Below are positions 4,501 to 26,621 of a stretch of DNA of 64,000 nt, piece after piece. The DNA is taken from positions 1-64,000 of the forward strand of contig CDMY01000329.1 in assembly GCA_001179505.1 (NCBI GenBank), given 5' to 3'. The stretch comes from Vitrella brassicaformis CCMP3155. Lineage: Eukaryota; Protista; Chromerida. Each line of letters starts with the position of its first letter. Position 1 is the first letter of the stretch. Made by a program: the position numbers and the translations under genes. The notes beneath the pieces were generated by a model, which saw nothing but the letters and a program-made list of their open reading frames with translations, ran no database searches and had not been told where the DNA came from.

Positions 4501-6117
4501 NNNNNNNNNNNNNNNNNNNNNNNNNNNNNNNNNNNNNNNNNNNNNNNNNNNNNNNNNNNNNNNNNNNNNNNNNNNNNNNNNNNNNNNNNNNNNNNNNNNN
4601 NNNNNNNNNNNNNNNNNNNNNNNNNNNNNNNNNNNNNNNNNNNNNGCCCACAGCATCGCGGTAGACGAGCTTCCCCTGGTCGCCTCGATACACAGTGTGC
4701 ACCACGCCCCGCTCATCACGGTACACCAGCTTGCCGCTCTCGTCACGGTACAGCAGGGCCTTGCCGTGGTCGGCGCCGCTGGCCACTGCCAGGGCCGATG
4801 AGCCGTTGCTCGCACCGGCATTGGCGCTGGCGTCGCCACGTGTGGGTGTGCGGGCGCCCCGCAGAGATGAGGGGGAGAGGGAGGAGTCGGTGACGGTGTA
4901 GTATGACTCCTCATCTTCATCCTCCTGGTCGCTCTCGAAGACGTCTTCTGCCGCCTCGTCGAAGAGCGGCTTCCAGCCGATGGGTCTGCAACGCACGGTG
5001 GGAACACATGGGTGGGTGGGTGGGTTACTGTGTGCGGAAGGGCACATTGGCTGACTTGGGCATGACGGCACCGAAGTTGCGATATATGGCGGGAAAGGGG
5101 GCGATGTGGGGGCATTCAGACGACTTCTGCCAGTCCGCCAGCTCCACCTTAGAGCTACCACACACACAGACAGGAAGGAACGAAGAACACACATCCGCCC
5201 GCCAATGGCGATCCCGGCCGTCATGATCGTCCTTCATTCACCTACCGGTTGAGCAGCACTTTGCCTCGGTGCCGAATATCCACATTGGAAGCCCGATATC
5301 TGTCTTTCCTTCTCTTGATCTTCCTGCTCCTCTTATCCCCCTTCACCAACTCCGCCGCATCAGGCCGCACATCATGGCCTGCACCACCATCGGACCGCAC
5401 AGCAGCAGCAGCAGCAGTAGCCTCGCTCCTTGCTCCCCGTGGCTTCGGCAGCCGACTGCCACGAGTGCCCATTCCCAAGCCGCGGCCATCATAGTCCCCA
5501 CCGCCGCCCATCCCGAGACCCCGCCCGTCATACTCATCATCCACCTCGCCAACGCCTGTGGCGGGGCTGACGGCCACCGTGGATGGCGGCCTGTGGCTGC
5601 TGCCGTTCGTCGGGTGGAGCACATTCGACTCTCGTGGGATGCTGTTGTATGTGTCGAAGTCAAACGCGCCGATGGGGTCGTCGAGCCACGTGGTGGAGTC
5701 TGATGTCTTGACGGGCGAGAGGATCCGTATCGACCCGTCAGGCGCCCACCAGCTGGGAGGCGAAGCGGACGGCAGCGGCGGAGGGGGCGGCACTGGGGGG
5801 ATGTCACAAACACACACATGCAGAGAGAAAACACACATGACATGACATGAGTGGACAGGCGGCCAGGACATTGACCGTGTTGGTTGCTTCTGGTCTGTCT
5901 GCGCAGCCTGGCTGGCTGGCTGGCTGGCTGGCTGGCCTCACCGACCGTCAACGTTCGCCGCTGCCTTCCGTGCTTTGTCAGCATCATAGCCACTGGCGCC
6001 TTGTGAGGTTTTCTTGCTGCCGATGAGGCCTTTGTATATCTGTTTGAGTCCGACTCGCCTCTTCCAGTCCTGTTTCCTCGTCTGCCGCCCACCCTCTGCT
6101 GACGGCAACACCTCCAT
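1572..6117 (-). CDS. Multi-exon hypothetical protein, largely low-complexity, with short LVYRDxxG repeats; interrupted by a gap and duplication
   Basis: ATG 6117 (MEVLPSAEGG..., GT donor near 5940). Coding-like exons in ORFs 5242-5871, 3191-3949, 2583-3218, 2179-2586 and 1572-1940. Last exon RWAERKKQLEGQRRQEPAKET*. Confidence 0.55.
3371..5620. repeat. 975-bp duplication (3371-4345 equals 4646-5620) flanking a 300-N gap (4346-4645); likely unmerged contig overlap
   Basis: The copies appear identical at 1275-bp offset and both end exactly at the gap edges. Confidence 0.85.
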
Positions 6118-6361: not shown

Positions 6362-7193
6362 ATGAAGTTCGGCGCTGCGGCGACGGTGCCTCTCTCGATT
6401 GCTGCTCTGCTCTCAGCCATGCCATGCGGTGCATTCATACTGCCACGGGTGAGCCAAGATTGCTGCATACATTGACTCGATGCTAGATCTCTTGCTTCTG
6501 TTGTGCTTGTGTGCGTTCGTTGGTGGCCGCAGGCATTCGGTGACGCAATGGAGAGGCGACTTGCTGCTGCTGCTGCTGCTGGGCCTCATCCCTTCATCTA
6601 TCGGCCAACACACAGCTCTCTTAGAATGAGCGTGGCTGCACCACCCCGCCCCGCCATCGAGAAATCGCCTGAGGTCATCACTGCCCCGTCAGAGCCTGCC
6701 CGCGATGAGACCCCCAAGAAGGCAGATAAGTACAAGCTGATCCTATACAATGACCCGTAAGCCGGCCACTCCAAGTAGGCGGACAGGCAGACGACAGGGT
6801 GTGTTGTATGTGTTCAGGGTCAACACGCGAGAGCATGTTGCACGAACGCTCTGCAAAGTTGTCGGTGAGTGAGTGAGGCGGGCCAGATAGATGAAGGCAG
6901 CCGCACGTAAGGTAGCCTCTGCTAGTGTCACCCGCCGTGCGTCGCTGCTGCCTCTTCCTTGCCTTGCAGGTTTTGACAACAAGCAGGCGTTCGACTGCAT
7001 GATGAAGGTACGCACGTCGATTCGTTGTCCATCCATCCGTCCATCCATCCATGCATCCATGTTGCTCCAGGCTCACACGACTGGATCGGCGTTGGTGGGC
7101 ATCTGGGGCTTTGAGCTGGCTGAGTCTTACCACGAAGCACTGAGAGCGCACCAGCTCGTCACCGAGATCTTCCCCGTAGACGAGGACGACTAG
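6362..7193 (+). CDS. clpS: ATP-dependent Clp protease adaptor ClpS with bipartite (signal plus transit) plastid-targeting leader; 5 exons
   Basis: MKFGAAATVPLSIAALLSAMPCGA-FILPR leader. ClpS core YKLILYNDPVNTREHVARTLCKVVGFDNKQAFDCMMKAHTTGSALVGIWGFELAESYHEALRAHQL, joined by in-frame GT-AG introns. Confidence 0.92.
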
Positions 7194-7957
7194 CAACACA
7201 CCGGCAGATGGCAGAGCTCTTTTGCGCCTCGAGAGCTTAGCCAGCGCGGCGGCGTTGTTTGCGAAGTGCAGTCAGTGAGGAGGCTAGGCTTGCGAACACG
7301 CGGCCCTTGTAGCTAGCTATCTCATCATGTATCATCTTCTATCGCTTAGCATGCCCAAAGGGACGGACACTCTGTGGAGTTTTTGCGAGTGTGTGGTGGG
7401 TGTCGATGTCTGCATGTCTGCCTGCCTGCCTCAGTTTTGTTGCCTTGCTTGTTTCCTCTGTCTGTACAGTGAGTGAATGCATCCCCTCCCATCCCATCCG
7501 TGTACACTGCCTGGCTAAGGGACTGGGTGGGACTGATGGGACTTGCTCTCAGTTTGCTGCCCGACATGACATGAATTCAGTCAACCACCAATCACGTGTT
7601 CGTCCGTCGCTGCATTGGCCATCACCATCAGCATGTGTGTATGTATGTCTGTGTGAATGCACCCCAGCTCAGCAGTCGCAGTCTGTCTGTTCCATCACCT
7701 CCCCTCTCACACCATGGCCGAAAAAGCATAGGCGGCCGAGTGATGGATGGATGGATACATCTCTTAGGCTTGTGAGCCCAAGGGAGCCACTCAGTCAGTC
7801 AGTCAGTCAGTCAGCCTATAAGTACATAACAAATACATCAGTGTGTATGTACACGCGCTAAGTTTGCCCCCGTCAGGGCAAACCTCAATGCATGCAACGC
7901 AATGCACCACTCCGAAAAAACAGGACCAAGAAAAAAACTTCCCAATGTCTGTCCCCC

Positions 7958-10900
7958 TCAGCTGATCCCATCAACGGCGCTGACAGCGTCCTTGCAGCGT
8001 GCAATGAGGGCCTGGAAGGTCTCCTCCTGCTGCTGCCGCGACGCCCTCACATGGCCGTCAAGTCGCGGCAGGGCCCCCTCCAGCTGGACCTCCTTGTGCT
8101 GGTTGTCGAAGGTGCGGAGGGCCTCTCGCAGCTGGCCGATGGGCTGCTGCTGCATGTACACGCCCCGTCTGGCCTCCTCCATCATCAGCTTGTACGCTGT
8201 GAGGGCCTCCCACGCCTCGTTGATCGCATCAGAGACCTCATCAGACAGTCGAGCTGACGCACAGACAAACACAAGGCGAGATGGTGATTTGAGGTTTCAC
8301 CCATACATAATTGCCCAGCTCACCCGCAGTCTCCAGTGACTGCAGTTTCTTCTTCATGGTTTCGGCGCTGGCCAGTCGGCGGTGGCAGGCGATCAGGAAG
8401 GACACGCCCTCACCCAGATACACCTCACCAAATGACTCAGCCGCGCCATCGGGCGAACCGTCATTCGCCTGGAGAGGAGATATGCCAATGAGCCCAGCCA
8501 GCCCTGTCTCAGTCAGTGACTGTGTGCGTGCCCGCTGCGTACGTACCTTGTCCTTCTCGGCCTTGATCCATCGCTCTGCGTCGAACCGGATGAAGGTCTC
8601 ATCGTCGAGCTTGTTCATCATCAGGCGGGTCCGGGCGGCGCGAAGCGTCGCCTTGAGGCGGAGGACCATGCGCATGGACAGGTTGAGCCGCGAGTCCTCC
8701 ACGTTGGCCCCCTGCTCCAGCTGAGCGTCATTGACGGCCCCCTCCCCTCCCTCGGCGTCCCTCTCGTCCTCCTCGAGACCCTCCGGCCCCCGGTTGCTCG
8801 GCGATGCCCCGCCAGTGGCAGCAGTGGGGCTACCGTCCTCGGCCGCTTGCGTGTCTGCGTACGATGAGCGCGGCGAGGATCCGTCGTTGTCTGCTGCGGC
8901 CGGCCGGGAAGTGGTGGTGGCCTGGGAGGCCTGCTGCTGTTTGGGTGTGAAGCGGGCGAGGAAGGCCGAGGTGTCGCAGTGGAGCCTGCCGTCCTGCCTC
9001 CGAAAGACCACGACCTCTGCGCGGGGCGGCTTCCACGTGACGCGCGTCAGGTGGGTACTTGGGTTGCCGGAGGCGTCGAAGGACGAATGAGAGAAGAAGC
9101 CGCTGGTGTACCTTGGCCCCGGCCAGCCTGTTTGTTACGACCAAATACAGGTACGTACCTAGAGGTGCGTTGTTCGCGAGCGTACCGAAAGGAGCCCTGA
9201 TAGTGTCAGATCGTTTGAGCAGCACGAAGCTGTCGTCCAGATCGTGCAGCACCGAGTGCAGGTAGGGCGTCTGGCGGTCGAAGGACAGCGGGCCGCGAGT
9301 GCCGTGAGCTTGCTTGTCGGGGAGCGGGTCCAACACAAGCGCAGTCTGCCACACCCACACACGCATACACACCAACCCGCGATGAACGAGTGCATGAGTC
9401 AGCTCTCTTTGTTTGTCGCCTGGCTGACCATTCTGTGGTGGAGCGATTCGTCGTTTTGTTGGATCACAGCTGGCAGGCCGTGCAGCAGCCTGCGGACCTC
9501 ATGCCAGCGGCCACCGCCAGCCCACCCATGGAAGGACCGCTGGATCGCATTCCTCTGCCGACTGAGGCTCGTGTGGCACCCTCCAGCCGTCAGCATCACG
9601 CAGATGGCCCGGTGCACGAACGCGCCCCTGCGTGTGCCGAAGTTGTCCAGCCAACGCGTCAGCTTGTCCCGGAACCTGCCGGTTGAGAAACCATCACAAA
9701 CAAACCTGTTCATGAATTGCTCCGCAGGTACCTCGGATGTAGGATGTGGCTGATGAAGTCGATGACGCCGTACAGGGCGCGGTGTGCGAGGCCGTTGACC
9801 AGGTGGGGCTTCTCGTATTGCAGCGTACAGGCAGACTCGATCAGGCAGGGAGGGCAGCGACGCATGAAGTCAACGGCCATCGACTGCACACACACACACA
9901 CGCACAGAGAGAGAGCCATGGCGTCTGGGACACAACGACTGTGCATGGTAAATCCTGCCTGCATACCTGTGGCAGCAGTAGGTTGTTCATATCCGAGAAG
10001 AGCGCTCCGGCGAAGCAGACGAGCCGCTCGCAAAACCACAGCAGGGTGTGTGGGTCGAGGCTGAAGCAAACCACACACACGCATGAGGATGCCCGTCTGT
10101 CTAGTCCATGTTCAGGTACATACCTGATGGTGAGAGGGTGGAAGTCCTGCACATAGGTCTGTGGGGTCATGGCCCGGATGGCCTGCTCGGCGGACCAGAC
10201 TATCTCGGCATAGCAGTGCCGCACGTGCTCCACATCGTCGGACTTGTAGAAAGCATTGCCCTCCCACCACACCGACGCTATTGAACAACAGAACAGCCAC
10301 ACACGCATGGCGAAAAGGAGTGTGTGGCGATAGAGTGAGTGTACGGCATACAGAAGAAGAGCCACGTGGCGTCTCGGTTGTCGGACATCATGTTGTTGCG
10401 CAGGACAATCTCCACCGTGTCCATGCCGTGGTAGCCGACGAGACTCGCAATGCGACACACACTGCCGACCTTGTGTGCTATAGCGTCTGAGCGCTCGGCT
10501 GCCAGCAGGTCGTTGATCTCCGTCTTGATCAGCTCGTCGAGGGGAAGGCAGTGGTTAATGGCGGCCATGCGCAGGAGGCCGCATGGAGCGAAAGTCGGCA
10601 TCAAGACCTCATTGCACAAGAAACTGTGCACCTGGGAGATACAGAATAGGTTGGCGGCCGGCCGGCCCCTGCAAGAGTCAGTCGAGTCGTTCTGTGTACC
10701 TGTGCGGCTTTGGCGGTGTATTCTCTTTGTAGCTCCACCATGGAAGCATCGTCCTGCATCGCCCGCCGCATCTCAGCAGCCTCGAGATTGACCCTGACGG
10801 CCTTGAGCGTGGCGAGCAGGCTGTTGACGTCGCCAACCACCGCACCGATGTCGGGCTCCTGCTCCATGTGCCTGCACAGTAAGTGGATCCATGTCAGTCA

Positions 10901-13900
10901 CTCCTTGCCCACCTATGTATCTATCCCTTTCTTTCGGCTCGCTCACTGGTAAGGGCATCCCTGGCTCCGAGCGCGACACTTCTTCTGCATGTGGAACGAC
11001 CAGCACGGCTGCATCCGCTTGAGCCCGTCCACCGCCGTGTCGAGCCGCCTGCACAGTCCGCTCACGAGCTTCTTGTGCAGGAACGACGACAGTAGCGGCA
11101 CCACATCGTGCAGCGAGACCGACGAGGTGCCCTCCTCCGCCACCTTGACGAGCATCTCGTTGCCCGAGACGTCCTTGACACGCACACGGCCCGTCATGAG
11201 CTCGACCGATTGCTGGATGGCGATGGGTATGGGGCGGCGGTTCTTGAGACACGCACTCATGTGGCAGAGCGAGGGGTCCTCGGGGGAGAAGACGTGCTTG
11301 TCGCATGCTGCATTCAGACCGGATTGAAGCTTGAACGCATCCTGCCGGACAACGACACACAGGCGGGCTGATTGGATGGGCATGGCAATGTGATGATGAA
11401 GGCGCCTGTTTTCACTCTCTGAAACGGACCTGGAGTTTGCCGTCCTTGCTGTACTCATCGCGATAGTGGACGAGGCACGACGCCCCCAGCTCTTGGAGGA
11501 ACAGCAGCCACGACAGGCACGTCGCTCGCTGATGGACGTCGGTCTCGATCAGCCGCTGGTAGTGAGTCTTCCTGATGGCCTTGAGCAGCATGTGGGCGCC
11601 CTTACCGAAGAACTTCTTGGCGCTCTCACGGGTGCTGTCCAGCACGCCAATGAGCATCTCGTCGAAGCTCTCCTGCTGCTGCTGCTGGTGCTCATTCTGG
11701 GGACGGTTGCGGGCCTGCTGTGCGTCCTTGAGGTCGCTGACAAGGGTCGCGACCTGCGTCTTGGTGCTCTGGCGGCCGGTGAAGACGGCCATCGCCCCGG
11801 TGGTGTTGAGGAAGCCACAGAGCTTGGCCATAAGAACACGGTGGAGACGCTCCGGATCCTGCTGCAGCATGGTAATCGCCCGCTGCTCCTCGCCACCCAT
11901 GAGACACAGATCGGCCGCCTCCGAGAAGCGGCCCTGCTCCACCAACACGTTGATGTGAGGTCCTGCGAGACACACACACACACACACCCCCACAACCGAT
12001 CCGCTGCGTCCGTCCTTTGTCATGATCGTGAGTGACAGGTCTGTCTGTCTGTCTGTATCGGTTAGTCACTCACCTGTCTGTTAGCCTGCAGCAATATCTC
12101 GCACCGCACGTTGAGGGGCAGGAGGGCGGCCGATCGCTCATACATCTGGGACTGTTTCGGCCTGTGGACAGCGGCGGCACCGCCACGCCGGCCACGACCA
12201 CCCCTCGACGGCTGGTCAGCCTCGCGCGCGGCTGTCCTGAAGATGCGCTGGGCAAACCTGCACGCCGTGAATGAACCAACAGCAAGCACCAGGCACTTCA
12301 GACAGCCAACGCAGTGCGCGCACAGCCAACGCAGTGCGCACACAGCCGTACCGTTCGACCATGGGCCGTACGTCTGGAATTCCAGAGCCTTCGAGCCATT
12401 CGCACAGCTGCAGCCCCTCCTCCATCTTCTTGACTTTGGCGTAGGAGTCAAGGGCCCTCTTGGCATGCGCCCTGTCGTGTGTGACCTTGACATGAGCCTC
12501 CCACATGACACCTGATGGATGGATGGATAGTGGACGACCCACAGACACAGACGGTCGTGACGTGTGGGTGAGTGACGTATATCTTCTCCGTGTGTTGTGG
12601 TGTGTGTGTCTTGCCTGCACTGAGCCACGCGTTGTCGTTTTCATAGCAGATGGCGGCCTTGTCGTATATTTCGCAGCCCCGGTAGGCTTCTGCCGCCTCA
12701 CTGACATGACCCGACTCGACGAACAAATCTGCAACACACATGCATTGATTGCATGACAGACACATGGATGGGATGCCTCAGCGTGGGTGCGATTGCACAC
12801 GTACCTCCAGCCTCTCTCAGCAGCCATTTCGTGCCGCCCTCCTTCTCGGCATGCAGGTACTGGCGAATGAGGGCGAAGTCGGCAGAGTCGGTGGGTGCCT
12901 GTGTGACGGCTCTGTGGAGCGCCTTGAGCTCGCCCGCCGGGATGGCCATCTCGCGCTTCTTGTTCTTCTTGCTCGTGAGGCGGATCTTGTGCAGCACCTC
13001 GGCAAGACGCGCCATCTGAGGCTCCTTCGCATTAGAGAAACTGCACACACACACAGACGGATGCACCACCACACAGACAGGCCAGCCACTTGTGCGAGCG
13101 ACGACTTCACCTGATTCTGGCACTGTCGAAACGGTCGGCTCGCAAGAAGTTCATGGCTCTCTCGCACCACTCCTCCTCAGTGCTCTCTCGCGCAAAAGCC
13201 TCCTGCATGCCGAGGTCCTCCTTGGAGTGAACGTTGTTGACGAGCTTCATCTGGTCCCAGTAGTACAGCATCGGCCCGACGTGGTCATCACTGCTGTCGA
13301 TGATCCACACGCGCTTGCGGGCCCTTGATTTAAAGGAAGCACACAAGTCGGCACACTCATCTGGGTGCTTTGGTGTGTCAGTGCTACAGATGCGTACCTG
13401 GTGATGGCGACGTACAGCTCTTTCAGGAGAGAGCAGAGGAGGGCGTCTCGAGAGGCGTCGAACTTGCCACAGACGCGCTTCAAGATGGAGGGGTCAACCT
13501 AAAAACGGAGAGCAATGATGTGGTGTGGGCGACGGAGCCAAGCCATCCTATCCTCCCACACATACGGTACGTCGGGGCGTAGCATTCACTTACCGTGGCG
13601 TCGGGGTAGACGTCCTGTATGAAGGCGTACACGACTGACCACACGTTGGCAGATGAAGCGGCACTGTGGGGGCGATGGATGTCCTGGGTGTCGGCGAAGA
13701 AGTTGACCAACAGCACATCTGATTGACATGAAATGACATCGATGACACAACACAACATAACACAACGCACCCACATGCATCCATCCATCCATCCAGATGA
13801 CCATTGTCTCCTCCTCCCCTACCATCGAACTCGAGGCCTTTCGACTCCTCTATGGTGAGTATGATGGACGACGGGAAGTGCTGCTCGAGCTGCTGACGGG

Positions 13901-16900
13901 TGGCGTCCGTGCGGACCAGCAGCGCCTGCTGGCTGCCGAATTGGGGCCCAGCGAGGGGGTTGCGAGTGGCGGGGGGAGGGGGCGAGGAGGAGCTGCTCGA
14001 AGCGGCCTGAGAGGCAGGCTTGTTGAACAGCAGCTTGAAGGCATCGGCGAGCTCCATCTCGGTGATCACAACCGGCAGCAAGTGGTTGTCTGCACGTAAG
14101 AAACACACCGCATGGCATCACATCACAAACACACTGGCAGCTTGTTTGCATTAGTATGACCTTCCATCGATTCTTCTCGCTCGAGCTGACAAGGTAAGGT
14201 GCACAAAGACAAAGGAGAGTCTATTCTTCTCACCCACTTCTAAAGTCGATTCTTCTCTTCTTTCTTACCCTGTCTATCTTCTCGGGGAACATGTGCACCA
14301 GCAAATCGATCACACTCGCAGCCAGCTCTGCACACAACAAACAGACAACATTAGGCCTCGTGCCTTTGTATGTTCTCCCACACGTACCGATGACGCCCTT
14401 GGATGAGCGGTAGTTTTTGGAGAGGAATTTGAGGGCCTGGGAGTACTGCTGCTTCCACTGTGGGGTGTTCTTGATGACCTCTGGCACGAACATCTCGTAG
14501 AAGAGCGACTTGATCGACTCGAACCTGAACTCTCTGCCCTTCGCTATCGTCTGAGCCGTGTCACCTGTGTGCACACAACACAACACAACACAACACACCG
14601 CAGAGCACACAATGTTGACTGACTGACTGGTGCCTGGTGGCTCTCGAGAGGTCTCTGTCTGTGTGTACCGGCAAAGGCGAAGTGTGTTGGGTTGCTGGTG
14701 AGGTATCTGAAGATGAGCATCTGGATGGGCAGCAGGTCCTGCACCTCGTCGATCATGACACCGCGGACATCCACCAGCTGCCGCAGACCCTCGCCGCTGT
14801 CCCGCAGACGGATGAGCAGCTGCCTGGCGACGTTGGCCGCGTCGTGGCGCCCGTGGACCCTCAGCAGCTTCTCGTACCGCTCGAACGCATCATACACACA
14901 CCTGCAGTCACGGCACCCACCCACAGTGGCCGGCCACTTATTTCACTGTAGTCTTGTTTCTCTCACTCACTCTGTATGCTGACCTTCTCGCATTTTGGTC
15001 CTCAATGGACGACTCCTTGATGCGCTCTTTGTCCACCACACCGCACTCGTACTCTCCCCTGGAGAACCAAGACACATGCAACAGAGCACACAGCCATGTA
15101 GTAGCTCCCTCCCCTGTTTGTCGTCCTTCTCATGCGTACCTCGTGAGCCATGCGTTGGTTTCCTTTCCGCTGAGTATTCTCTTGGCCACTGGCTTGCTCC
15201 CCTTGATGACGGTCAGAATCTCCTTGAAGAAGGTCAGGGGCGAGATGTCGCTGCCCCCTAGGGCAGATGCAAGCTTGCGCCACCACCCGCCGAGCATGAA
15301 ATCATCAAACGTCATCTGCGACGTACCAAGAAGCAACCAGGACAGAGGGATGGGTGGGTGCTGGGCTGTCCGTGTGTGGCTAAGCTGACCTCGTCCTCCT
15401 CGAAGTAGCGTCCGCTCCTCGCGAGTGGGTCCTCAGTCGTCAGGTCATTCAGCATGAGATCGTCGACGTCCTGACAACGAACGTCAGGGACGGGCATCGA
15501 TGGACAATGTCAGACGAGACAGCATTTAGGTGTGCGTCACTCGTCACTGACCTCATCGATCTCTTCGTCCTCATCATCCTCGTCAGCAGCGGCAGTGGCA
15601 CCAGCCCGCCTCCGCTGCTGCTGGCTGAGATGCGCGCCACGCCGCAGCTGATCCTGAAATGGACATGTCGACAGCCGCAGCCGTGTGATGGGATGAAAGT
15701 CGGTAATCTCTGGTCTGTTGTGTTGACCTGACCTCGATGGTCATTGTCCTGAAACACCGCTGTCCGGCAGTGGAGGTGTCGAGGAGCTTCAGGAACTGCT
15801 GAAAGGACAGGATGAGCACGGAACAATCCTCAGCCGCACCGAAGTCCTTCAGCTCAGCCGCAGCAGCTGTATTCATCGGCAGGCAGACCCGACACCACAC
15901 ACACAAGACGTATGTAGGAATGTTTGTGTCCACCCTGACTGACCGTCTTTGCCGGGCGCGTTTGGATCGCTGGTGACGACCCCCTCGTCCATGATTTCCT
16001 GCTCTCTGCTGGTCCCCACAGCTTCGATGTAGTTGTGCAGCCGCGTGTAGTGCAGCTGGATCTCAGCAGCCAGCTTGGGCGAGGCTGTGCACAGCACCAA
16101 CACACGGTTGTGGGCACCCGCCGGCCGGACGCTGTTGCTCGCCTCTTGCAACAGCCGCTGGTGGGCAATGACCAGACGCTTCACTGCACACATAACAACA
16201 CAGACAGACAGACACAAGGGTCGCTGCGTGTAAGCTGGATCGGTTACCGAGGCAGAGAGTTTTGCCGGTGCCACTGCGTCCAAGGACGAAGAGTGGTGCG
16301 GGCGCCCGCACGACGACGTGCTCCTGTGCGGAGAGTTTGAGAGGCAGCTCGATGTCCGTGAGAGTCTTCTCCGCAAGACGATGCAGTAGCACTTGATCCA
16401 TCTCGTACATCTGCATGGAGCAACACACCAACACGAGCGTCATAGCTAAAGACACACATATGAGTGGACTCTCACCTTGGTGAGTGAGACCGATGTGTTG
16501 GCTGCCGTCGAGTCGACCTCCTCCACCTCAAACGCCACACGACCACCGCCCAGCTCACGCCTGAATCAAGGAAGGAACCAAACCGACACAACCACCTGCT
16601 GCGGTGCCCCTGGAGTCTGTCCGTGCCCTTTACTGTCGTCTGAATGGGAGCCGCTTGATGACAAAGTCGTCCCGGAAGCATTTGGGCAAATACGGGCCGC
16701 CCTTCTTGCCGCGACGAAGACGGCACCGATGCAGATACTCGTCACTGAAGGTCTTCAGGTGGCGTGACGCACGCTTGAGGGTGGCCTGCACGTCTTGTGT
16801 GGGGACGAGGTCGAAGACGAGTATGGTCTGCTGGTACTCGAGTGTGTCATCAATCCGCACCCACCAGATGAGGGAGGCGTTCTTGTTGCACCTCCAGGCC

Positions 16901-19900
16901 TCCACTGCCAGTTCCCATAGCTCCTTGCCACTGCCTGAGGCACCCTCACTGAAATGGGGAGAAACAGAGACCAATGCAGGAGTGCGACAATGGAATGATG
17001 GATGTCCGTCGGCTTACTGTGCCGACGTTGGGAAATGACCTGAGGAGAAGAAACAAAGGAGTGCCACGCAGGCAGGTGCTTGCCAGCCTTTCGATGCAAT
17101 GTCTGTCGCCACTCAACTCACTGACTGACCTTTGATGAGTTGTATGATCTTCTTCTCTATCCATCTCCGACTCTCCTGCCTCATGCCGTTGACCCGCGCG
17201 AGGAAAGCGGCACTCACAGAAATCTCCCACTTGGGCTCATCCGCCTTCTCCCTCTCCCCCCGCCTCTCATGCGGCCTCTCCCTCTCACCAGCCCTCTCCC
17301 TCTCCACGGACGGCCCCTCCTGATTGACAACAGCAGGGGCTGCTGAGGGCACCGGCGGCAGGTCGTCCGACGGCGACGATGCCAGGCCGTCGAGAACATC
17401 TAGGTCGGAATCGAAAGAGCCCCCACACCGTGCCGGTGCCGGTGCCGGCGCCGCTGCTGCCGCTGCCGGGGGCGAATGGGGCTGCGGCACGTGCACGTGC
17501 TGGGGTGGTGGTGAGGCTACAGAGGATGATGCAGGTGAATCCCGCCTGACGAGCCTTGTCGCGCGCTCCTGCCTCTGCACTTGTGGGCGTGGCGGGAGCG
17601 ATGGCTGTGGCTGTGGGGGTCGGGGTGCGACACTCGTGCAGATGGACATGGCATCGTCATCGTCGTCTGACAGCACCGTGTCATCCATGTAGTCCTCGTC
17701 CTCGTCACAGTCGGGTATGCGGCGATGCATCATGCGATGGTGGGCGGGGGCAGCGGGGCGGGCAGGAGGGAGAGGGGAATGGGACTGGGCAGGCCGGGCG
17801 ATGTTCAGGCGGTGGAATTGGAACGCGTGGGCTGCATTGGGCTGCGGGGGAGCAGCTGCAGCAGCTTCGGCCGGTGATGGGTTATGCAACCGCTGCGCCG
17901 ACGACGCGATGGCTCCGAGCTGACCGAACAAGGTCACATCAGACATTCGTAAGCTCGTGAGGGTACAGCTGGGGTGTGTGCGGCTCACTTGTTGTCTGAG
18001 CCTCATCTGGACGGCTTGAGCTGAAGGCCCGGGGACCGCTGGGAAGACAACGCGCTTGGCCTCACAGTGACGGATGAAGGACGCCCAAAGTGGGTGGTTG
18101 GAGAGGGTGTCCTTGTGCCCCACGACCCACAGGCGGTGCCGCGCCCGGGTGAGGGCGACATTGAGGCGCTTCTTGTCGCCTGTGAAGCCCACATTCCTGT
18201 CACCGTTGGCTCGCACACACGACAACACGATGATGTCCCGCTCGTCCCCCTGGAAGCCATCCACTGCAAAAGAGGTAGTGAAATCGCACCAACACATCTA
18301 CGAGGCGAGGGCTTCATGCAGTCTGCCTGTCTGCCTGTCTGCCTGCCCACACACGCATGCGGTGACGCACCTGAGTTGACGGTGATCCTCTTTGCAAGTC
18401 GGCCCAGCTGCGATGCACTCTGCTGGATGGCCTGGTGGAAGGCGCGCTTCTGAGCACCATATGGCGTGACGACACCGATCGACACACCTGCACAGACACC
18501 ACACGACACACACAGTGCAGTGACACAGATTTGCTCCCGGTTGGCGTGTGAGCTGTGAGTGGGTGGTCGGTTACTGCGGCGCGGCCTGAAGTGCTTGAGA
18601 AGGGATGTGAGGTGCTCAATCACAAAGTTGATCTGCAGACATGAACACACATGGATGACGATAGGCATCCAGTCCACTCACCCACCACAGCCCACCTCTG
18701 TTTCGTTCTTTTTGCTGGAGTTCTCTGTCTTCTCCCACACGCCAGGCAGACCGGTGGTGTCGAAGAATGCCAGAGGGCCGAACCTACACGCACAGAGAGA
18801 GCAGCGAAGGCTTGCCTGCCTGCCTGCCTGCCTGCCTGCCGGTGTTCTCCCTCCTCTGTGTGTGTGGTGGTGTTGCCGACTTGCCTTTTGTCGTCGAGTA
18901 TTTGTTCGTCGATCTCGTCGGCATCCCAGAGCTCCCCCTCCCGCTCGCCAATGCGGAGAACGTTCTCGCCGTTCATGAGCCTCCGTTGGGAGAACGTCTG
19001 GTTTGGCCACTCAGCAATCTCCGGGTGCATGCGGTACTGAACGTTCTGCACACACACCACACCACACGACACACACACACGAAAGAGAGAGCAATCCAAC
19101 GACGGTCAAGGGCCACGTGCTGACCCTGGCGATTACCAGCATGATCGGTTTCGCTCGTGTGGGGTCGTGTATGGGGCTGAGCCCGCCTTGCTGCTCGCCA
19201 CGCAGTGGTGAAGTGACTCTTTCGAAGAGTGATCGCTGTAGCCCTGCCACCTTGCACTCATCGCACTTGACGGTCTGCCCGAGCTGCCTCGGGTCCCCGA
19301 CCACAAAAAGCCGACACACGGAACGCGTGAGCGGAATGAGACTCTCAGACTCCTTCACCTGCATACATCAGACAGGCAGACAGAAGGGCGTCCGCATGCT
19401 GTGGACGTCGTGTCATGGGCTGGTAAGTAGGTGTTACCTGCGCCGCCTCATCCACGATGAGCGTGTCGATCCCCAGCTGCTGCAGGCGGAAGCGGCCGCT
19501 CACAGACGACGTGCAGAAGACCGCATGAGTGCCCTGCATATACACAAGACAGGCAACGATACATAACACGATCGGGATGTTCATCGATGCGAAGGATGCG
19601 CACCCACTCACCACGGTCAGGAGGCCGCGGATGTCGTCACTGGGTGTGTTCTTGACCGCCAGGCCCTCGTTCCTGACCGCGGCAGCCTGTCGGTGGAGAT
19701 TGTGGAAACGTCGCTTGAGCTCGCCCACAATGGGCCCGTCAATGATGTGATGGATGTCCGTCTGCACCACGGCGGCAAAGGAAGGGGCCGGAGTGTGGCT
19801 GGTGGGGCCGTCGGATGCTGATGCTCCGATGCGTTGCAGCTTTCGGAGGGCTCGATTCATGCCGTTGAAGAGGTCGTTGACGAGGGGCGACTCCTCGAGA

Positions 19901-22900
19901 AGACGAAAGAGCTGCACACACGCAATGCATGGATGGATGGATGCATGGATGGATCTACAGATGGACCCACGGACAGCTATGTATGCGCACCGTGGACACG
20001 ATGGAGTGGAATGCGGTTATGGCTTCCTTCATCCTCTCGAGGGTGTCCCGGGCCCGCCACCACTGCGTGTGGCCGGGGATGGGCGGCAGGTGCGCCTGAT
20101 ACGTCTCCACCTTCACACACAAGACAGCAACACAGGCACAGCCATGGACAAGTGGACGGGTGCCGCCGTGTGTGTGTGTGTGTGTGTGTACCTGTTTGGA
20201 TAGTGTGTCCTTGAGCTGCTCGATGCACGAAATGAAGGCCTCACGGACGTCACCGCCCTCGGCTGCACACACAGCACAGCACAGCACAGCAGAAGAATAA
20301 GTGGGCATGTTGGTTGCATCCACACATCGTTCGTCGACGCACCTGAAGCCCATTCGAGGAGCCGGTCGGCCATTCTGTAGAGCTCCCCATCGTCGCCATC
20401 GCCGCTCATCCACACTGTGCTGCCCTCGTCCATGATTGCGCAAAGGTCGTCCCACGACCTGTCCACCATCTGCAGCGAGCTGGTGGGGTCATCGCGCCAC
20501 CAGTATTTGGCCACTCGCTTGAGGCGCTTCTTGCGGTGGTTCAGGTGGATCAAGGACAGCGGACTGTCGAACTCAATCGACTCTGCCAACCAAACAAGAA
20601 AGTCATTGCCCATATGCGCAACTCGCCCCACTCTCTCTCTCTCTCTCTGCGTTTGTGTGTGCGAGTGGTGTGTGGTGGATACTTTCGGTGTCCTCTTCGC
20701 TGACGACGAGCAGAAGGCGGAAGAGGGGCACCACTTGGAAGCCGCCCACAGACCGCTTGGCCTCGATGTGCTGCAGCACCTTGAGAGCGACGTGCTTGAC
20801 AGCCACGTTCGTCGCCGCACACACCATCACCGGCCTGAAACAACACATGCATGCACAGAGAAGGAAGGGCGTGTGACGGATGTGATCTTGCCTGCCAGCA
20901 GCTCCCTTACCTCTCGCACGACACGACGAAGTAGACGAAGGTTGCGATGAAGGTCGTCTTGCCGGTGCCTGGCGGCCCCTGGACGGGCATGATGCCGGTC
21001 GGCCGCAGCAGGGCCTCCTGCACCGCCATCTTCTGAGCCTCGTTGATCAGCGGCCATGCACCAAGCGCCTGATAAACACGCAATTGGTCGGTTTGGTGGA
21101 TTCTCATTTGTCGGCCTCTGTATGTACCTCCTGTATGGCTTCGGCTCCGTGTGTCCATATCGGCCCGCCGTGGTGCCCCTGCTGACCCTCCACCAGCATC
21201 GCCCTGACCACACACACACAGAGGCAAAAAGAAAAAAGAATGCGTTTGCGTGTCCTGATGATGCATCTCCATCTAGCAGACCTACCTGATGTTCCGCGAC
21301 AGCTGCTGCCAGAAAACGGGCTTGCGCGAGAGGCCGCTCCCCAGCGCCTCCATGACGCGGACATCCGTCATGGTACAGCTGTTCAGGGGATAGAGCCGCC
21401 ACGACAAGCTCTCATCCGACAGCCGCGCGGCTCTCGGCCCCGGGAAGAAGTGGGCAATGAGTCTGCTGCTGTCGTCATTCTTCACGCGCTGCCACATGAT
21501 GAAGGCGAAGAAGCTCTCGCCGGGCCCCTCGTCACCCTCCTCGATGGTTGCGCCAGAGCCACGCAAGAGGGCGCGGGAGCCCTGAGCGGTCGTGAAGAGG
21601 GCGACCGAAGCTGAATGAAATACAGAAGGCAAATATGGCAGACGATACATACACACGTGTATTTATGTACGTGTGTCGGTCGGTCGGTATGCATGCGCAC
21701 CGTGTGGAAAAGCCTTCTGGAGGCCTTTGTGTGTCTTCTTGGCGTCGATGGACTTCCAGGCCTTGTCGTCTGGGTTGTAGAGCACCCTGTACTTGTCCAT
21801 GTCGTCAGCCTCCTTCACCTTGGCACGCCGCTCGTTGTCCTTGGCCATGCTCTTGAGCTTCACATCGTACGCTGCCGAGGCACCATCCAGCCGCCGGATC
21901 GCCTGGGCAACCGATGCACGGCACTCTGCGAGCAGGGGCTCCACAGAACACTGAACATCACCACACCAACACACCACACCACAGCAACAGGAATACTCAC
22001 CATTGCCCCCCTCCCTCCCTCCGTCTCTCGTGTTCGTTGTCCCATGTGCGTACGTTGAGGTATTGCTCAAAGGAGTCGAATGAGAGTGGGATGGGCTGGA
22101 GAGGGCTGGGCGGGTGGTAGTCGCCCTGACAGGCCAGCACGTCAGCCATGGCGAAGGTGCCTGCCGCGCGCAGCAGCCGCTCCTTCATCTCCTGTTGGTT
22201 CTGACGGCGCGTCATCTGGTCCTGCATCTCATCCGTCAGCGGCCGGCTCCACACGGGGGCTGCCGCTGAGAGGTCGGCCGCTGCTGCTGGTCTGTCGACG
22301 GCCAGGTTGGGGTCGGCAGAGAAGGGGTATAGGGCGTCGACATCACCCTGATCGTCATAGTAGTCTGGCACATCCCCTCCCAACCTGCACCAAGATCCAC
22401 ACAAAGATGCAGGCGTGTGTCTGTGTGTGTCGGTGTGCAGGTGGGCAGGCGAGCTTTGTTTTCGTTCGTTCACCTTGGGTGTGTCGCCTGGGGGCGCTCT
22501 GGTGCGTGGAATGTGTCTTCATCTGCAGGGCTGGCGGCTGGCGATTCGGTGGTCTGCTCGAAGAGCTGGTCCACCTGGCCGCTCATGAGCAGCCGGATGC
22601 CGCGAGAGGCCTCACTGAGGATCTGACTCTGCGCGCGGAAGGACACGAAGAGCACACGGCACCACTCGAAGGGATCAGCGACGGCCTGCGATGGATGGAT
22701 GGATCGATGGATCACACACACACACCACCACACGTCCAATGAATGGATGACACACACACCTGGCTGTATGCAGTCAAGTGAAGGCATTACCAGATGCGGG
22801 AACCGCTGTTCCTTAAGCAGGGTGCGGTACATCTCCTCGCGTGCATCGGAAGACGTAGCCGCACCGCCGTCCGTCTGCCTGCACGAAAACGGCCCTGCGA

Positions 22901-25139
22901 CGGCGGCCTCCCGCCGGACGCTGTCGTGGTGTTGGGGTGCTGCAGATCGACGACATTGCGGTGGGCGTCATAGGTCGATATGAAGTGGAAGAATGAGAGC
23001 AGGAGCGACGAGAGGGAGTGGGATGGGGACGAGGGATCGAGACGCAGCTCATGGGGGCCGCCGTGGCGGCACCAGACGTTGTGTGTGACCCCGTTCTCTA
23101 TGATGAGTCGCTGGGGCTGGTTGTCGCTCTGGCCGTGCGGCTGCTGGAGGTTGGGCAACAGCCGTCTCTTCTTCTGCAGGAAGTGCAGCACCAGCAGCAC
23201 CCACCCATAGCTCGACAGGAAGCCATCACGCGCACCCAAGAGGCCTCGCCTGCACACACAGACACACACGCACAAGGGAGGATCACACACACGTGTGGCA
23301 TATGTATGTCACGTGATGGCGCCCACCGTTTGGCCCACAATTTGACGAGCCGTCCGAGTGCGGCAGTGGTGCCGGTGGTGTCGAGGTCGCTGTATCGCCG
23401 CAGGAGGTTGGAGTTATGGATCACCAGCGCATGGTTGTACGTGATGTCGATGGACACATCCGTGCCATCAGCACCCTCATAGTCTGTCGACACACACACA
23501 CACACACGAGGGAATGAGTGCATCAGTTCGTTGGAATGGAATCCACCAAAACCCGTGTGTGTTTACTTGTGGCGCTTCGGGAGAGGGATACCACCGGCAC
23601 ACGCGCTCGCCACACCACCTCTACCTCCCACCTGCCCCCCCCCCCCCCCCCCNNNNNNNNNNNNNNNNNNNNNNNNNNNNNNNNNNNNNNNNNNNNNNNN
23701 NNNNNNNNNNNNNNNNNNNNNNNNNNNNNNNNNNNNNNNNNNNNNNNNNNNNNNNNNNNNNNNNNNNNNNNNNNNNNNNNNNNNNNNNNNNNNNNNNNNN
23801 NNNNNNNNNNNNNNNNNNNNNNNNNNNNNNNNNNNNNNNNNNNNNNNNNNNNNNNNNNNNNNNNNNNNNNNNNNNNNNNNNNNNNNNNNNNNNNNNNNNN
23901 NNNNNNNNNNNNNNNNNNNNNNNNNNNNNNNNNNNNNNNNNNNNNNNNNNNNCCCCCCCCCATCCAGACAAACACACCAACACACGCGTCGTCGCCACCC
24001 GCACCTTAAGAAATCGTGCCTGCCTGCCCACCTACCCTCGCTGCTGAAAGTATGTTTCGCATGCCCCCGCCGCCGCCAGCACGTCGTCCCGGCTCAGTTC
24101 GGGACAGTCAGGCAGCTCCTCAGACCGCAGCCCACGATCGAAGGCCGGCGGCGCGTCAGAGGAAGAGGCCGGGGCAGCAGCATCAGCAGCCCCTGATGCC
24201 ATGCGATCGACAGCGCTAGTCACAGCTGCCGCAGAGGGGATGATGGCCACCACGTCGAGATCGGAGTCCACCAGGCCGAAGGTGTTGAGAGCTGAGCCGT
24301 ACGATAGAACTTGTGTGTCAGGGCCGAAGAGACCCATCAGCTGGCTCGACACGTGGCTGTATGCCCTCATGAGAACAGACAGACGATCGGGTGCGAGGGA
24401 GTTGGTGGCGTCCACCTCACGCAGGGCAGCGGAGATGATCCCTTCCTGGCCAGTCGGCAAGGCGGGCGGGGGAGGGGCACCGCTGACAAGAGGACAGGCA
24501 GAATCACACCATCACTCTCATGAAGTGTGTGTGTATCGATTCGTGTGTGATCTCATCTCATACGGTGTGTCGGTGAAGAGCGTCAGCAGCCTGGGCACGG
24601 CCACTCGGGGGATGAGCGAGCGACGCCGCAGTGTCGTGAGCAGGTTCTGCAGCCGAGGAGTGAACTCGGGAGAGGCTAGACAGGCGGTATTCTCAAACAC
24701 ATGGAGAACCTGACACAAAACAACACACGCAGCCAGACAGACCCAGCCACCCAGCCAATAGGATGGGTGCGGTTCGATGTGTTTGCAAAGGCCGCGATCA
24801 GCTCACCACTGGCCGCAGACTGTCGAGTGTTTCGATGGGAAGGAACTGCAGCCCGGCGCAGGACTCCAGCAGCCTGTCAGACCAGACAACACACAGCACA
24901 GCCAGATGCACAGATCCGGGTGTTCCTGTCGTCTATTCCTACGTGATGAGGTTGTGGGTGAATTCGTCCGCAGGCACATGCCTGACGCACGGGGTGTGAG
25001 CAAGGATCCATTTGCACACGCTCACGAGGGTATCCGCTGAGGCGTGCCGAGGCAACGCCTCGCTGATCCCATCTCTTGGACAGCCAACGTGGTGTTCGCC
25101 GGGAGATGTCACGGATGGTGCGGAGGGTGGATTGTCCAT
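7958..25139 (-). CDS. Giant multidomain protein: Cid1/TUT-type nucleotidyltransferase, Sen1/Upf1-like helicase, TRANK1/LBA1-like UvrD helicase, TPR and coiled-coil C-terminus (single-gene model)
   Basis: ATG 25139 (MDNPPS). All catalytic motifs are listed in the sub-features. Inter-domain splice junctions 22385-22473, 17040-17129 and 16949-17017 are GT-AG and in frame. One unresolved frame change near 22880. Confidence 0.65.
11400..17235 (-). CDS. TRANK1/LBA1-like SF1A (UvrD-type) helicase followed by TPR-like repeats
   Basis: GRSGTGKT, IDEVQD, AGDTAQTI, FRFESIKSLFY, NYRSSKGVI, ILTIEESKGLEFDDVLLVNFF, LKELYVAITRARKRVWIID, then TPR-like A-E-A-Y/KAAICY helices. Confidence 0.88.
18040..22130 (-). 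CDS. SF1B helicase of the Sen1/Upf1/DNA2-NAM7 type (AAA_11/AAA_12)
   Basis: IPLSFDSFEQYLN..EPLLAECRA, NEAQKMAV, QGPPGTGKTT, CAATNVAV, LIVDEAAQ, VGDPRQL, SLFER, QYRMHPEI, VVTPYGAQ, VDGFQGDERD, KRLNVALTRARHRLWVVG. Confidence 0.92.
22470..24485 (-). CDS. Terminal nucleotidyltransferase domain (Cid1/TUT4-7/GLD-2-like Pol-beta NTase plus PAP-associated region)
   Basis: YGSALNTFGLVDSDLDV (GS plus DxD), WRARVPVV, SIDITYNH..IHNSNLLRRY, LGRLVKLWAKRRG, LSSYGWVLLVLHFLQ, LLLSFFHF, ADPFE. Confidence 0.9.
23653..23952. other. Assembly gap (300 N) inside an intron of the nucleotidyltransferase region
   Basis: The flanking exons (...YFQQRG / WEVEVVWRARVP...) splice in frame across the gap. Confidence 0.9.
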
Positions 25140-25309
25140 GACTGCAACCGAGATCAAGGCGAGAAAAGCACTAGTCCGCTAGAGGAACCAACGCGAGCTC
25201 CGACTTCATTTTGGGAGCTTGAAAAGGATTCCTGTTCCTGCACTTCTCTCCCCACTGACGCCAAACACAACAACCAACCAACCAAGCATGACGCCCATCT
25301 GATGATGTG

Positions 25310-26621
25310 ATGAGCGACGATGTCAAGATGGCTGAAGGTGCCGCGGCAGATCAGGGGAGGGAGGCTCTCCTGACGCCTGAGCATCACGCTGGTGAGGCTG
25401 ATCATCCGCTGCTGACGCCGGAGCATGAGAGGCAAGAGCATGAGCAAGAGCAGCAGCAACAGCAGCGGAACAGCAGCCCCAGTCAGCAGGCACAAGAACC
25501 GCCAGCAAAGCGGCTGAGAATCGCACCTGATGAGGTACAGTTCCCACGACTGGCTGTCTTACTCGGCTCTGTCTGCAACACATCAACACATACATATGTG
25601 TGTGTGTGTGCAGATAGACAATGACCAGGATGACATCTTGCCACCATCGCAGCCCTCGCCCTCCCCTCCCACTGTTCCTCCCCAGCTGTCCCCGCCGCCA
25701 CCCTCGGTCCCCCGTCGTGTGCATGACCCGTTGGTGCATGGCTGCCGCAGCGTCAACATCTTCAAGAAGCTCAACAAAATCGACGAGGGCACCTATGGGG
25801 TCGTCTTCAGGGCACAAAACACAGAAACCGGTGAAATCGTGGTCAGCCGAGTCACAGCACACACATCGATGGTGAACACGTGCAGCCATTCGTTCAGGGT
25901 GCGCTGATATTATGGTGTGTGGTGTGGCATGTGTGTGTGGACATCAATCAGGCGTTGAAGCAGATCAAGTATCACGAGAAGCAGGAGAAGGAGGGCTTCC
26001 CCATCACCAGCCTTCGGGAGATCAGCATCCTCCTCAACATGCAACACGAAAACATCGTTGATGTCAAAGAGGTAATATAGCGGAAAAGTCAGAGAAAGTG
26101 ACAAGCCATGCTGTGCCTTCCTTGCTTGCCTGTATGTATGTGTGTATGTGTGTATGTGTGTATGTGTGTGTCTGTCCACCCCAACTAACCACAGGTTGTG
26201 GTTGGCAAGAGCCCCACCCACATCTTCATGGTCAGCCAGCCACAACCGTACCAACCGTACCTGTCCGTCGTTTGTCTGTGGATGTGATGTGATGTGCGTC
26301 TTCTTCCACCATACAATCAATGAATGCATTTTGCAGGTGATGGAGTACATGGAGCACGAGCTCAAGGCCCTTCTGGAGGACATGAAGAACTCATTCTCGG
26401 TCGCAGAAGTCAAAGCCCTGCTCCTACAGGTATGCAGCTGGCTGAACAGCCCGGCCAGGAAAGTGCTGTTCATTGCCGCTGGGGGATGATGTGTCTGGTA
26501 TTTCAGTTGCTCCGTGCGGTGGCGTACATGCATCACCATTGGATACTCCACCGCGACCTCAAAACAAGCAACCTACTGTTCAACAACCAGGGCGTCCTCA
26601 AGGTAGGCGACCTCCAACTAT

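Follow-up and report, generated by a model that had tools for sequence, protein, structure and literature searches.

We analysed a window of 64,000 nucleotides (positions 1 to 64,000 of contig CDMY01000329.1, assembly GCA_001179505.1, forward strand) from the chromerid Vitrella brassicaformis CCMP3155, in which the minus strand of positions 7958–25139 carries one large, intron-dense gene of eukaryotic character (GC content ~0.52–0.62). An RNA contig and a spliced chain of open reading frames (ORFs) together delineate the whole coding region, which comprises ~55 exons and a coding sequence of ~11.9–12.2 kb specifying ~4,000 residues. From its N-terminus, the predicted product is composed of a nucleotidyltransferase (NTase), a helicase resembling Upf1 and Sen1, a module of likely RelE/ParE-like fold, a second, UvrD-like helicase and a long C-terminal tail. 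We consider it highly probable that the NTase and both helicases are encoded by a single ORF on a single mRNA.

Among the public runs with matching DNA, X5 and X6, from different samples and studies, behave as RNA assemblies (their contigs are spliced), and X1 and X4 behave as DNA. Within the stretch used for RNA mapping (16700–22650), one spliced X5 contig of 13,485 nucleotides (nt) maps piecewise throughout, leaving 7,582 nt for the side below 16700 and 1,804 nt for the side above 22382. The connection between the NTase and the first helicase is present in both assemblies as a joint from 22382 to 22472 (side 179 in X5, side 81 in X6), which, shifted by two ambiguous bases, corresponds to the GT-AG intron 22385–22473 that a first-pass annotation of the bare sequence had proposed as the in-frame join of these domains. 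Both assemblies likewise bridge 16948 to 17126 with 18 letters in between; this fits introns 17040–17129 and 16949–17017, again as first proposed, around a micro-exon of 22 nt, with a GTCA that can be placed on either side.

The reading frame can be followed through these joins independently of any gene model, by taking the stop-free frame of each mapped piece and expressing it in contig coordinates. All eight mapped X5 pieces agree on the phase of the open frame (0 mod 3), and exon 22474–22874, the last exonic stretch of the NTase, falls into this phase by coordinate arithmetic; in the mRNA, the NTase, the first helicase and the beginning of the part with the second helicase are therefore read in a common frame. 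The RNA contigs and their common frame bear out the initial claim that three enzyme cores with intact motifs run in one in-frame chain on the minus strand. Splice-aware dynamic programming threads a stop-free spliced chain from the NTase to a stop codon at 7958–7960, which agrees with the end coordinate (7958) given at the outset. As a control for chance, we used a codon model trained on RNA-verified exons only and, using no RNA data in 7000–16699, compared the best spliced ORF chains in that stretch; the minus strand scores 523, against 50 for the plus strand and 6–13 for shuffled sequences.

The original exon picture agrees with the RNA for the introns it proposed and is incomplete beside them, having missed two in-frame introns: 17920–17988, which is observed in RNA (joint from 17919 to 17989 in X5 and X6), and 22686–22790, a candidate of 105 nt (GTAATG...CGCAG, TG-rich like the other introns) that is probable from its sequence alone. 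Intron 18784–18884 is of the GC-AG type (GCAAGT...GTAG) in RNA contigs of two runs; the other 14 introns checked are all GT-AG and 63–107 nt long, and 14 of the 15 overall end in CAG. Downstream, the RNA contig runs ~1.2–1.4 kb past the modelled stop (6500–7957), a segment that represents either a long 3′ untranslated region or an assembler-merged overlap with a neighbouring transcript. Loose RNA-contig ends at 20980, 21983 and other positions have no match elsewhere in the window, and are probably repeats or paralogues.

Several features of the data weigh against the single-chain reading and need to be set beside it. The gene model is approximate, in that ab initio dynamic programming recovers 9–10 of 15 verified introns, and the exon structure is a modelled one both below 16700 and within 19912–21285 (where the RNA contig fixes an exonic length of 816–817 nt that 1,000 splice combinations fit, the top ones being nearly tied); an ab initio mis-splice at the UvrD Walker A exon was set right by hand. 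The RNA evidence takes the form of assembled contigs, leaving room for internal starts, internal poly(A) sites and an NTase-only isoform, and the passage of the RNA contig across an assembly gap within the NTase (described below) is deduced from lengths, not directly observed. Moreover, an exhaustive HMMER search with a query exon of 394 residues (best match 108.7 bits) did not return the protein of this genome itself.

The modelled first coding exon begins with ATG 25139 (24943–25139, minus strand, border by model only) and, together with exons 24873–24807 and 24709–24564 (borders again from the model only), encodes ~140 N-terminal residues in which no domain was recognized. The N-terminal half of the NTase palm follows at 24036–24482 (minus), and presents a helix-turn motif with YGS (within 24284–24301) and the metal-binding motif DSDLD (24254–24268), downstream of which lies an Ala/Ser-rich insert of ~60 residues. 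In Pfam scans of stop-free pieces this half matches the MTPAP-like_central palm (PF22600; 24035–24511, E 3.2e-05), whose C-terminal end is recovered at 23329–23481; it also aligns with both catalytic modules of TUT4 across GS...DSDLD, and has an Atlas score of 0.95 (PF22600, PF01909 and TUTase clusters). A small exon (23567–23634, minus) encodes RARVPVV (23589–23609), the strand preceding the third catalytic Asp, and the Asp itself sits in SIDIT (23440–23454), followed by NHALVIHN, in exon 23327–23483 (minus; PF22600 positions 113–138). The next exon (22952–23249, minus) forms the central (PAP-associated) domain, with KLWAK and LSSYGW (23201–23218), and matches a series of PDB family members (TUT4 1.5e-04, Star-PAP 1.2e-03, then GLD2, URT1, TUT7, CutA and Cid1, E to 0.9); the last NTase exons (22474–22874, minus) hold the nucleotide-recognition motif ADPFE (22665–22679). 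Protein searches were fed single exons, for which most Pfam scans were blank, and Pfam PAP_assoc was not reached by such scans of the NTase. Matches of TALE proteins to an NTase exon were rejected as the summed scores of a short repeat.

The combination of YGS, DSDLD and SIDIT is that of the Pol-beta-type palm of the Cid1/TENT family, and by its motifs the NTase is a complete Cid1-family terminal nucleotidyltransferase, with palm and central domain and an intact Asp triad. In Cid1 the triad is D101/D103/D160, and the nucleotide-recognition motif consists of D330, F332, E333 and the uracil-reading H336, which contacts uracil O4; substitution H336R lowers the preference for uridine triphosphate (UTP) (PMC13702519). 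The Vitrella motif reads ADPFEWCRV, placing an Arg six residues past the Asp, at the position of Cid1 His336 (in an alignment of the motif only). Compared with the S. pombe poly(U) polymerase Cid1, the Vitrella domain shares the two-domain NTase architecture, the equivalents of the catalytic triad and the DPFE motif, and is distinguished from that stand-alone enzyme of ~400 residues by the Arg in place of His336 and by the ~60-residue palm insert. The term terminal uridylyltransferase (TUTase) used in the first-pass annotation is too specific because of this Arg: assignment to the Cid1 family holds, and nucleotide preference is probably not strictly for UTP. The PDB matches listed above do not tell uridylyl- and adenylyltransferases apart.

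Given that single-exon matches to known members are weak (E 0.02 to 1e-04), that the H336 equivalent is not His and that the palm bears a ~60-residue insert, one might suppose the NTase to have decayed into a pseudo-enzyme, or to be a signalling domain akin to OAS/cGAS. We judge this improbable: GS, the three Asp residues, KxWAK, LSSY and DPFE are all present, and the best Pfam, PDB and Atlas matches are all of Cid1/TENT type, none of them OAS or cGAS.

The palm is divided by the assembly gap (23653–23952, 300 N with poly-G runs on both edges), which most probably falls within an intron at 23635–24035 (minus) whose donor and acceptor are both present in the sequence. The donor GG/GTAGGT (exon end 24036, phase 2) and acceptor GGGCAG/G (exon start 23634) keep the frame, and the join across the gap gives the NTase and the following exon as 567 residues free of stops. 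PF22600 is covered at profile positions 6–68 above the gap and 113–138 below it, with the RARVPVV exon supplying the strand between; no exon need therefore sit in the gap, which most likely lies inside an intron. The lengths are compatible, in that the X5 contig needs ~980 nt above the gap, of which the model from ATG 25139 accounts for 857 coding nt down to 24036, leaving a 5′ untranslated region of ~126 nt. It could be objected that the scaffold joins unrelated pieces at this point, the N-terminal half of the NTase being foreign, as the gap length is an estimate. Such an artefact is extremely unlikely, since the palm segment encoded above the gap is continued below it without overlap, with order, strand and phase all as expected, the X5 contig requires the additional sequence above the gap and X5 contains 65% of the sampled words of 23953–25400, and the poly-G on both edges accounts for the sequencing break. 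Two more gaps of 300 N are found in the window, at 1191–1490 and 4346–4645.

Following the junction intron (22385–22473, minus; RNA-verified GT-AG), the region 17989–22384 (minus) encodes a Upf1/Sen1-like helicase of superfamily 1B (SF1B) with an N-terminal accessory region, as assigned by Pfam, motifs and RNA joints. AAA_11 is matched at 20910–21272, 19348–20016 and 19014–19367, and AAA_12 at 18623–19105 and 17116–18297 (E 1e-21), and this AAA_11/AAA_12 core carries motifs I–VI as in Upf1-like SF1B enzymes: GPPGTGKT (Walker A, 20955–20978), DEAAQ (19438–19452), GDPRQL (19281–19298), QYRMHP (19022–19039), VDGFQGDE (18241–18264) and ALTRAR (18139–18156). The closest matches are UPF1 (1e-17) and Sen1 (4.9e-16), then Nam7, IGHMBP2, ZNFX1 and DNA2, and true Sen1 orthologues figure among its nearest relatives by AAA_12. 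The true Sen1 proteins among the matches carry both SEN1_N and the SEN1 beta-barrel, and neither had a Pfam match in the exon pieces of the Vitrella helicase that were scanned, a soft result given the weakness of single-exon scans. A second GPPGTGKT Walker A occurs at 59671–59694 (minus), far from the gene; no double-helicase homologue matched there by tblastn, and it therefore belongs to a different P-loop protein. Three intronic segments within the helicase region (20270–20291, 20629–20663 and 22009–22029) reach a summed depth of up to ~1,480, against ~20–130 in most other bins; they abound in loose ends and false joints, in DNA and RNA runs alike, and resemble dispersed TG/CA-rich short repeats.

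Helicase 1 is followed, past intron 17920–17988, by a disordered, low-complexity Pro/Ala/acidic linker (17231–17919, minus). The connection between the helicases had originally been read as a Pro/acidic linker, which is indeed present, and a module at 16636–17230 (minus), built around the micro-exon (17018–17039) and its two flanking introns, had been overlooked. Conservation of the stretch 16804–17233 extends to homologues from dinoflagellates and plants (the module shares 34% identity with its counterpart in the dinoflagellate Effrenium). The Effrenium counterpart, modelled with AlphaFold (AF2) from an alignment of homologues, has a predicted local distance difference test score (pLDDT) of 84.6 and a predicted TM score (pTM) of 0.80; of the best 50 PDB matches listed for this model, 48 are toxins of RelE/ParE/HigB/YoeB/YafQ type and the remaining two are of Cami1, a CRISPR protein that is itself RelE-like (Foldseek probability up to 0.98, with weak E values of 0.04–0.45). 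A RelE/ParE-like fold is likely for the module on the basis of this model, and sequence conservation marks it as a part of the family-wide backbone, not special to this gene. The RelE/ParE toxin fold is a small alpha/beta one whose N-terminal helices pack against an antiparallel sheet, and RelE-type folds are RNases.

The second helicase (13111–16410, minus) is identified as a UvrD-like enzyme of superfamily 1A (SF1A) by PF00580, motifs and tblastn collinearity with Effrenium, Polarella and JGI homologues. The UvrD-helicase profile PF00580 is matched at 14547–14942 (25.6 bits versus a cut-off of 23), and UvrD_C and UvrD_C_2 are present in a collinear homologue. GRSGTGKT (Walker A, 16258–16281), IDEVQD (14736–14753), GDTAQTI (14545–14565), SKGLEFD (13824–13844) and a motif VI (AIT/RAR) split by an intron near 13398 supply the Walker A, DExQD, GDxxQ, V and VI elements of a UvrD/Rep-like SF1A helicase, such that two superfamily 1 (SF1) motors of opposite classes reside on one chain. 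The remaining ~1,250 C-terminal residues (7958–13040, minus, ending in the stop at 7958–7960; coding signal far above controls) are probably alpha-helical, and have neither a Pfam match nor similarity to any fetched homologue. The TPR repeats first ascribed to this protein were not recovered, as neither TPR nor ANK had a Pfam match in scans of exon pieces; at most there is a weak lead towards an alpha-solenoid (Atlas 0.85–0.90 for a tail exon, from Vps41-TPR, clathrin and Vps11/16 clusters).

Proteins collinear with model residues ~352 to ~2540 were retrieved by exhaustive search from Effrenium voratum (4,098–4,686 residues), Polarella glacialis, a JGI sequence, Closterium, Gonium, a chytrid, Pelomyxa and many plants; examples are CAJ1399274.1 of Effrenium voratum (4,305 residues), KXZ52835.1 of Gonium, KAH3744837.1 of Pelomyxa, and members from Glycine soja and Cannabis. 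Their Pfam content comprises AAA_11, AAA_12 and UvrD, with DUF6469 in plants, and identity in shared blocks is 24–37% by BLASTP, with tblastn reaching up to 62% in strongly conserved blocks and 70% in one block of 27 residues. The accessory region, AAA_11/AAA_12 helicase, RelE/ParE-like module and UvrD-like helicase of Vitrella are all collinear with those of Effrenium, Polarella, Gonium, Pelomyxa and plants, and by these alignments the double-helicase backbone is a widespread and old eukaryotic family, with members in dinoflagellates, plants, chytrids and amoebae. NCBI names its members “TPR and ankyrin repeat-containing protein 1” (in plants) or “UvrD-like helicase ATP-binding domain-containing protein”. 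The Vitrella protein belongs to this family, called TRANK1-like in plants, algae and dinoflagellates and defined by an SF1B helicase, middle module and UvrD-like helicase collinear in one chain. The earlier description as TRANK1-type is nevertheless too specific; the label itself derives from the NCBI plant names, and animal TRANK1 was not among the matches of two word-based homologue searches.

Two features set the Vitrella protein apart from the Effrenium, Polarella and plant double helicases: the N-terminal NTase, which none of them carries, and the C-terminal ~1,250 residues, which lack a detectable counterpart. The 4,305-residue Effrenium member has a TRAF-type zinc finger near its C-terminus in place of this tail, and a Polarella glacialis member of 6,097 residues has N-terminal EF-hand/calmodulin domains. 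Either the backbone readily tolerates fusions at its ends, as it would seem, or these dinoflagellate gene models have been merged. Domain fusions are common in giant protist proteins, which tempers the significance of any one of them.

An NTase Pfam family is present in none of ~45 long homologues, the spliced NTase resembles none of 199 fetched proteins (best E 0.15), and a metagenome scan with an NTase exon found no NTase-bearing relatives; the Effrenium gene spans 216 kb, which put any upstream neighbour out of view. In plant and Closterium homologues, 24–37 residues precede the position that matches the sequence immediately downstream of intron 22385–22473; the alignment of homologues thus begins only downstream of this intron, with which the fusion point therefore coincides. 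Taken together with the lack of NTases among the ~45 homologues, this identifies the NTase, from comparative evidence, as an N-terminal addition to a pre-existing double-helicase backbone. The double helicase is already annotated, and its N-terminal NTase is new as far as these searches reach (they were word-based, and covered neither InterPro architectures nor a close relative of Vitrella), in keeping with the first-pass statement that no version with an N-terminal NTase was known.

The same intron bears on the question of whether two genes, one for the NTase and one for the double helicase, are for the most part expressed separately, the fused mRNA being a minor read-through product. Retention of intron 22385–22473 would end the NTase ORF immediately, at an in-frame TGA (22470–22472), giving an NTase-only product; the N-terminus of backbone homologues falls immediately past the intron; and transcript ends are not visible in the contigs, points that speak for a conjoined transcript. 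The reading frame of the last NTase exon, however, is not closed by a stop within the exon but continues up to a canonical donor, the junction is found spliced in two independent RNA runs, a single contig in a single phase covers everything, and no unspliced contig at the junction is listed for X5 or X6. We accordingly assign read-through a low probability and retain the single fused gene; the TGA encountered on retention could let the gene alternate between a free NTase and the fused protein, or be an ordinary safeguard through nonsense-mediated decay.

To rationalize the fusion, we compared it with systems in which the same activities are divided among partners. Enzymes of the Cid1 family extend RNA by untemplated 3′ tails, and rely for this on helicases that act in trans (PMC7988573; PMC1079787). 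In TRAMP (Trf4/Air2/Mtr4), Mtr4 modulates tailing (PMC7988573; PMC1079787), and other such pairings are MTPAP–SUV3–PNPase in mitochondria and TUT4/7 alongside MOV10, a Upf1-like helicase, on LINE-1 RNA (PMC7988573). TRAMP (Trf4/5, Air1/2 and Mtr4) and TENT4–MTR4 resemble the Vitrella protein in combining a Cid1-family polymerase with an RNA helicase, and tail RNAs for decay (PMC1079787; PMC7988573); TRAMP differs in consisting of three proteins, with a Ski2-like 3′–5′ helicase of superfamily 2 and zinc-knuckle RNA binders, whereas the Vitrella protein has one chain and two SF1 motors, with no zinc knuckles seen. TUT4/7–MOV10 and MTPAP–SUV3–PNPase are alike in that an NTase needs or works with a helicase (in the case of MOV10, a Upf1-like member of SF1) to gain access to RNA 3′ ends (PMC7988573), yet their partners act in trans, and TUT4/7 are uridylyltransferases that possess zinc knuckles and the His, unlike the Arg-bearing Vitrella NTase.

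As the best overall explanation we favour, with a confidence only a little better than even, a fused NTase–double-helicase that would serve as a cis-linked machine for tailing and unwinding, i.e. a single-chain form of the partnerships between tailing enzymes and helicases known in trans. The SF1B motor may load on single-stranded RNA and strip it of structure or protein; RNA cleared in this manner would offer a free 3′ end to the NTase, which might then append untemplated nucleotides as a tag for decay or silencing, while the second motor and the RelE-like module could provide further remodelling and possibly cleavage. Coupling of tailing to unwinding in this specific manner we hold to be possible, though with somewhat less than even confidence. 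A role as an RNA-surveillance or antiviral effector, as first suggested, is conceivable; aberrant cellular RNA, transposon RNA and viral RNA are all candidate targets.

The principal rival to this scheme is a function on DNA or R-loops, in genome stability, transcription termination or control of transposon DNA, with the NTase serving not to tail RNA but, for example, to bind nucleic acid or to extend a DNA or RNA primer end. Motors of the UvrD and Sen1 types are active on DNA and R-loops as well, and DNA:RNA hybrids or DNA could accordingly be the target here, a further consideration that tells against tailing of RNA; helicase 1 itself scores almost equally for Sen1 and UPF1 and has true Sen1 orthologues among its nearest AAA_12 relatives, and helicase 2 is UvrD-like. 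On the other side stand the RNase character of RelE-type folds, the lack of SEN1_N or a SEN1 barrel in the pieces scanned (although single-exon Pfam scans were mostly blank) and the fact that characterized Cid1-family members tail RNA (PMC7988573), in the light of which we regard a DNA or R-loop role as unlikely.

Returning to the cis-linked machine for RNA tailing and unwinding, the fusion of a double helicase to an RNA-tailing enzyme, along with the conserved RelE-like module, suggests that the double-helicase family works on RNA ends, and therefore yields a testable hypothesis, namely that the family acts on RNA 3′ ends. Read as a “Rosetta stone”, the fusion would indicate that the whole TRANK1-like double-helicase family is a machine for RNA 3′-end surveillance or defence, in which the RelE-like module cleaves RNA and a tailing enzyme is recruited in trans elsewhere; we offer this extension tentatively and think it rather less probable than not. 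Were it true, the activities of tailing, unwinding and cutting would all reside on one chain in Vitrella. Literature searches found no mechanistic study of the double-helicase backbone, and nothing usable on TRANK1 with UvrD or on fusions of RelE with helicases; full-text matches to vertebrate TRANK1 are mostly infection and interferon expression studies, and the TRANK1-like family is perhaps related to this interferon-induced vertebrate protein. The Vitrella protein could also furnish a single-chain model for the control of tailing enzymes by helicases, so far studied in multi-protein complexes like TRAMP.

Several marine sediment metagenomes (2023–2025) hold the words of 23953–25400, from the upstream part of the gene, at fractions of 0.05–0.74; Vitrella or a near-identical strain therefore occurs in marine sediments.

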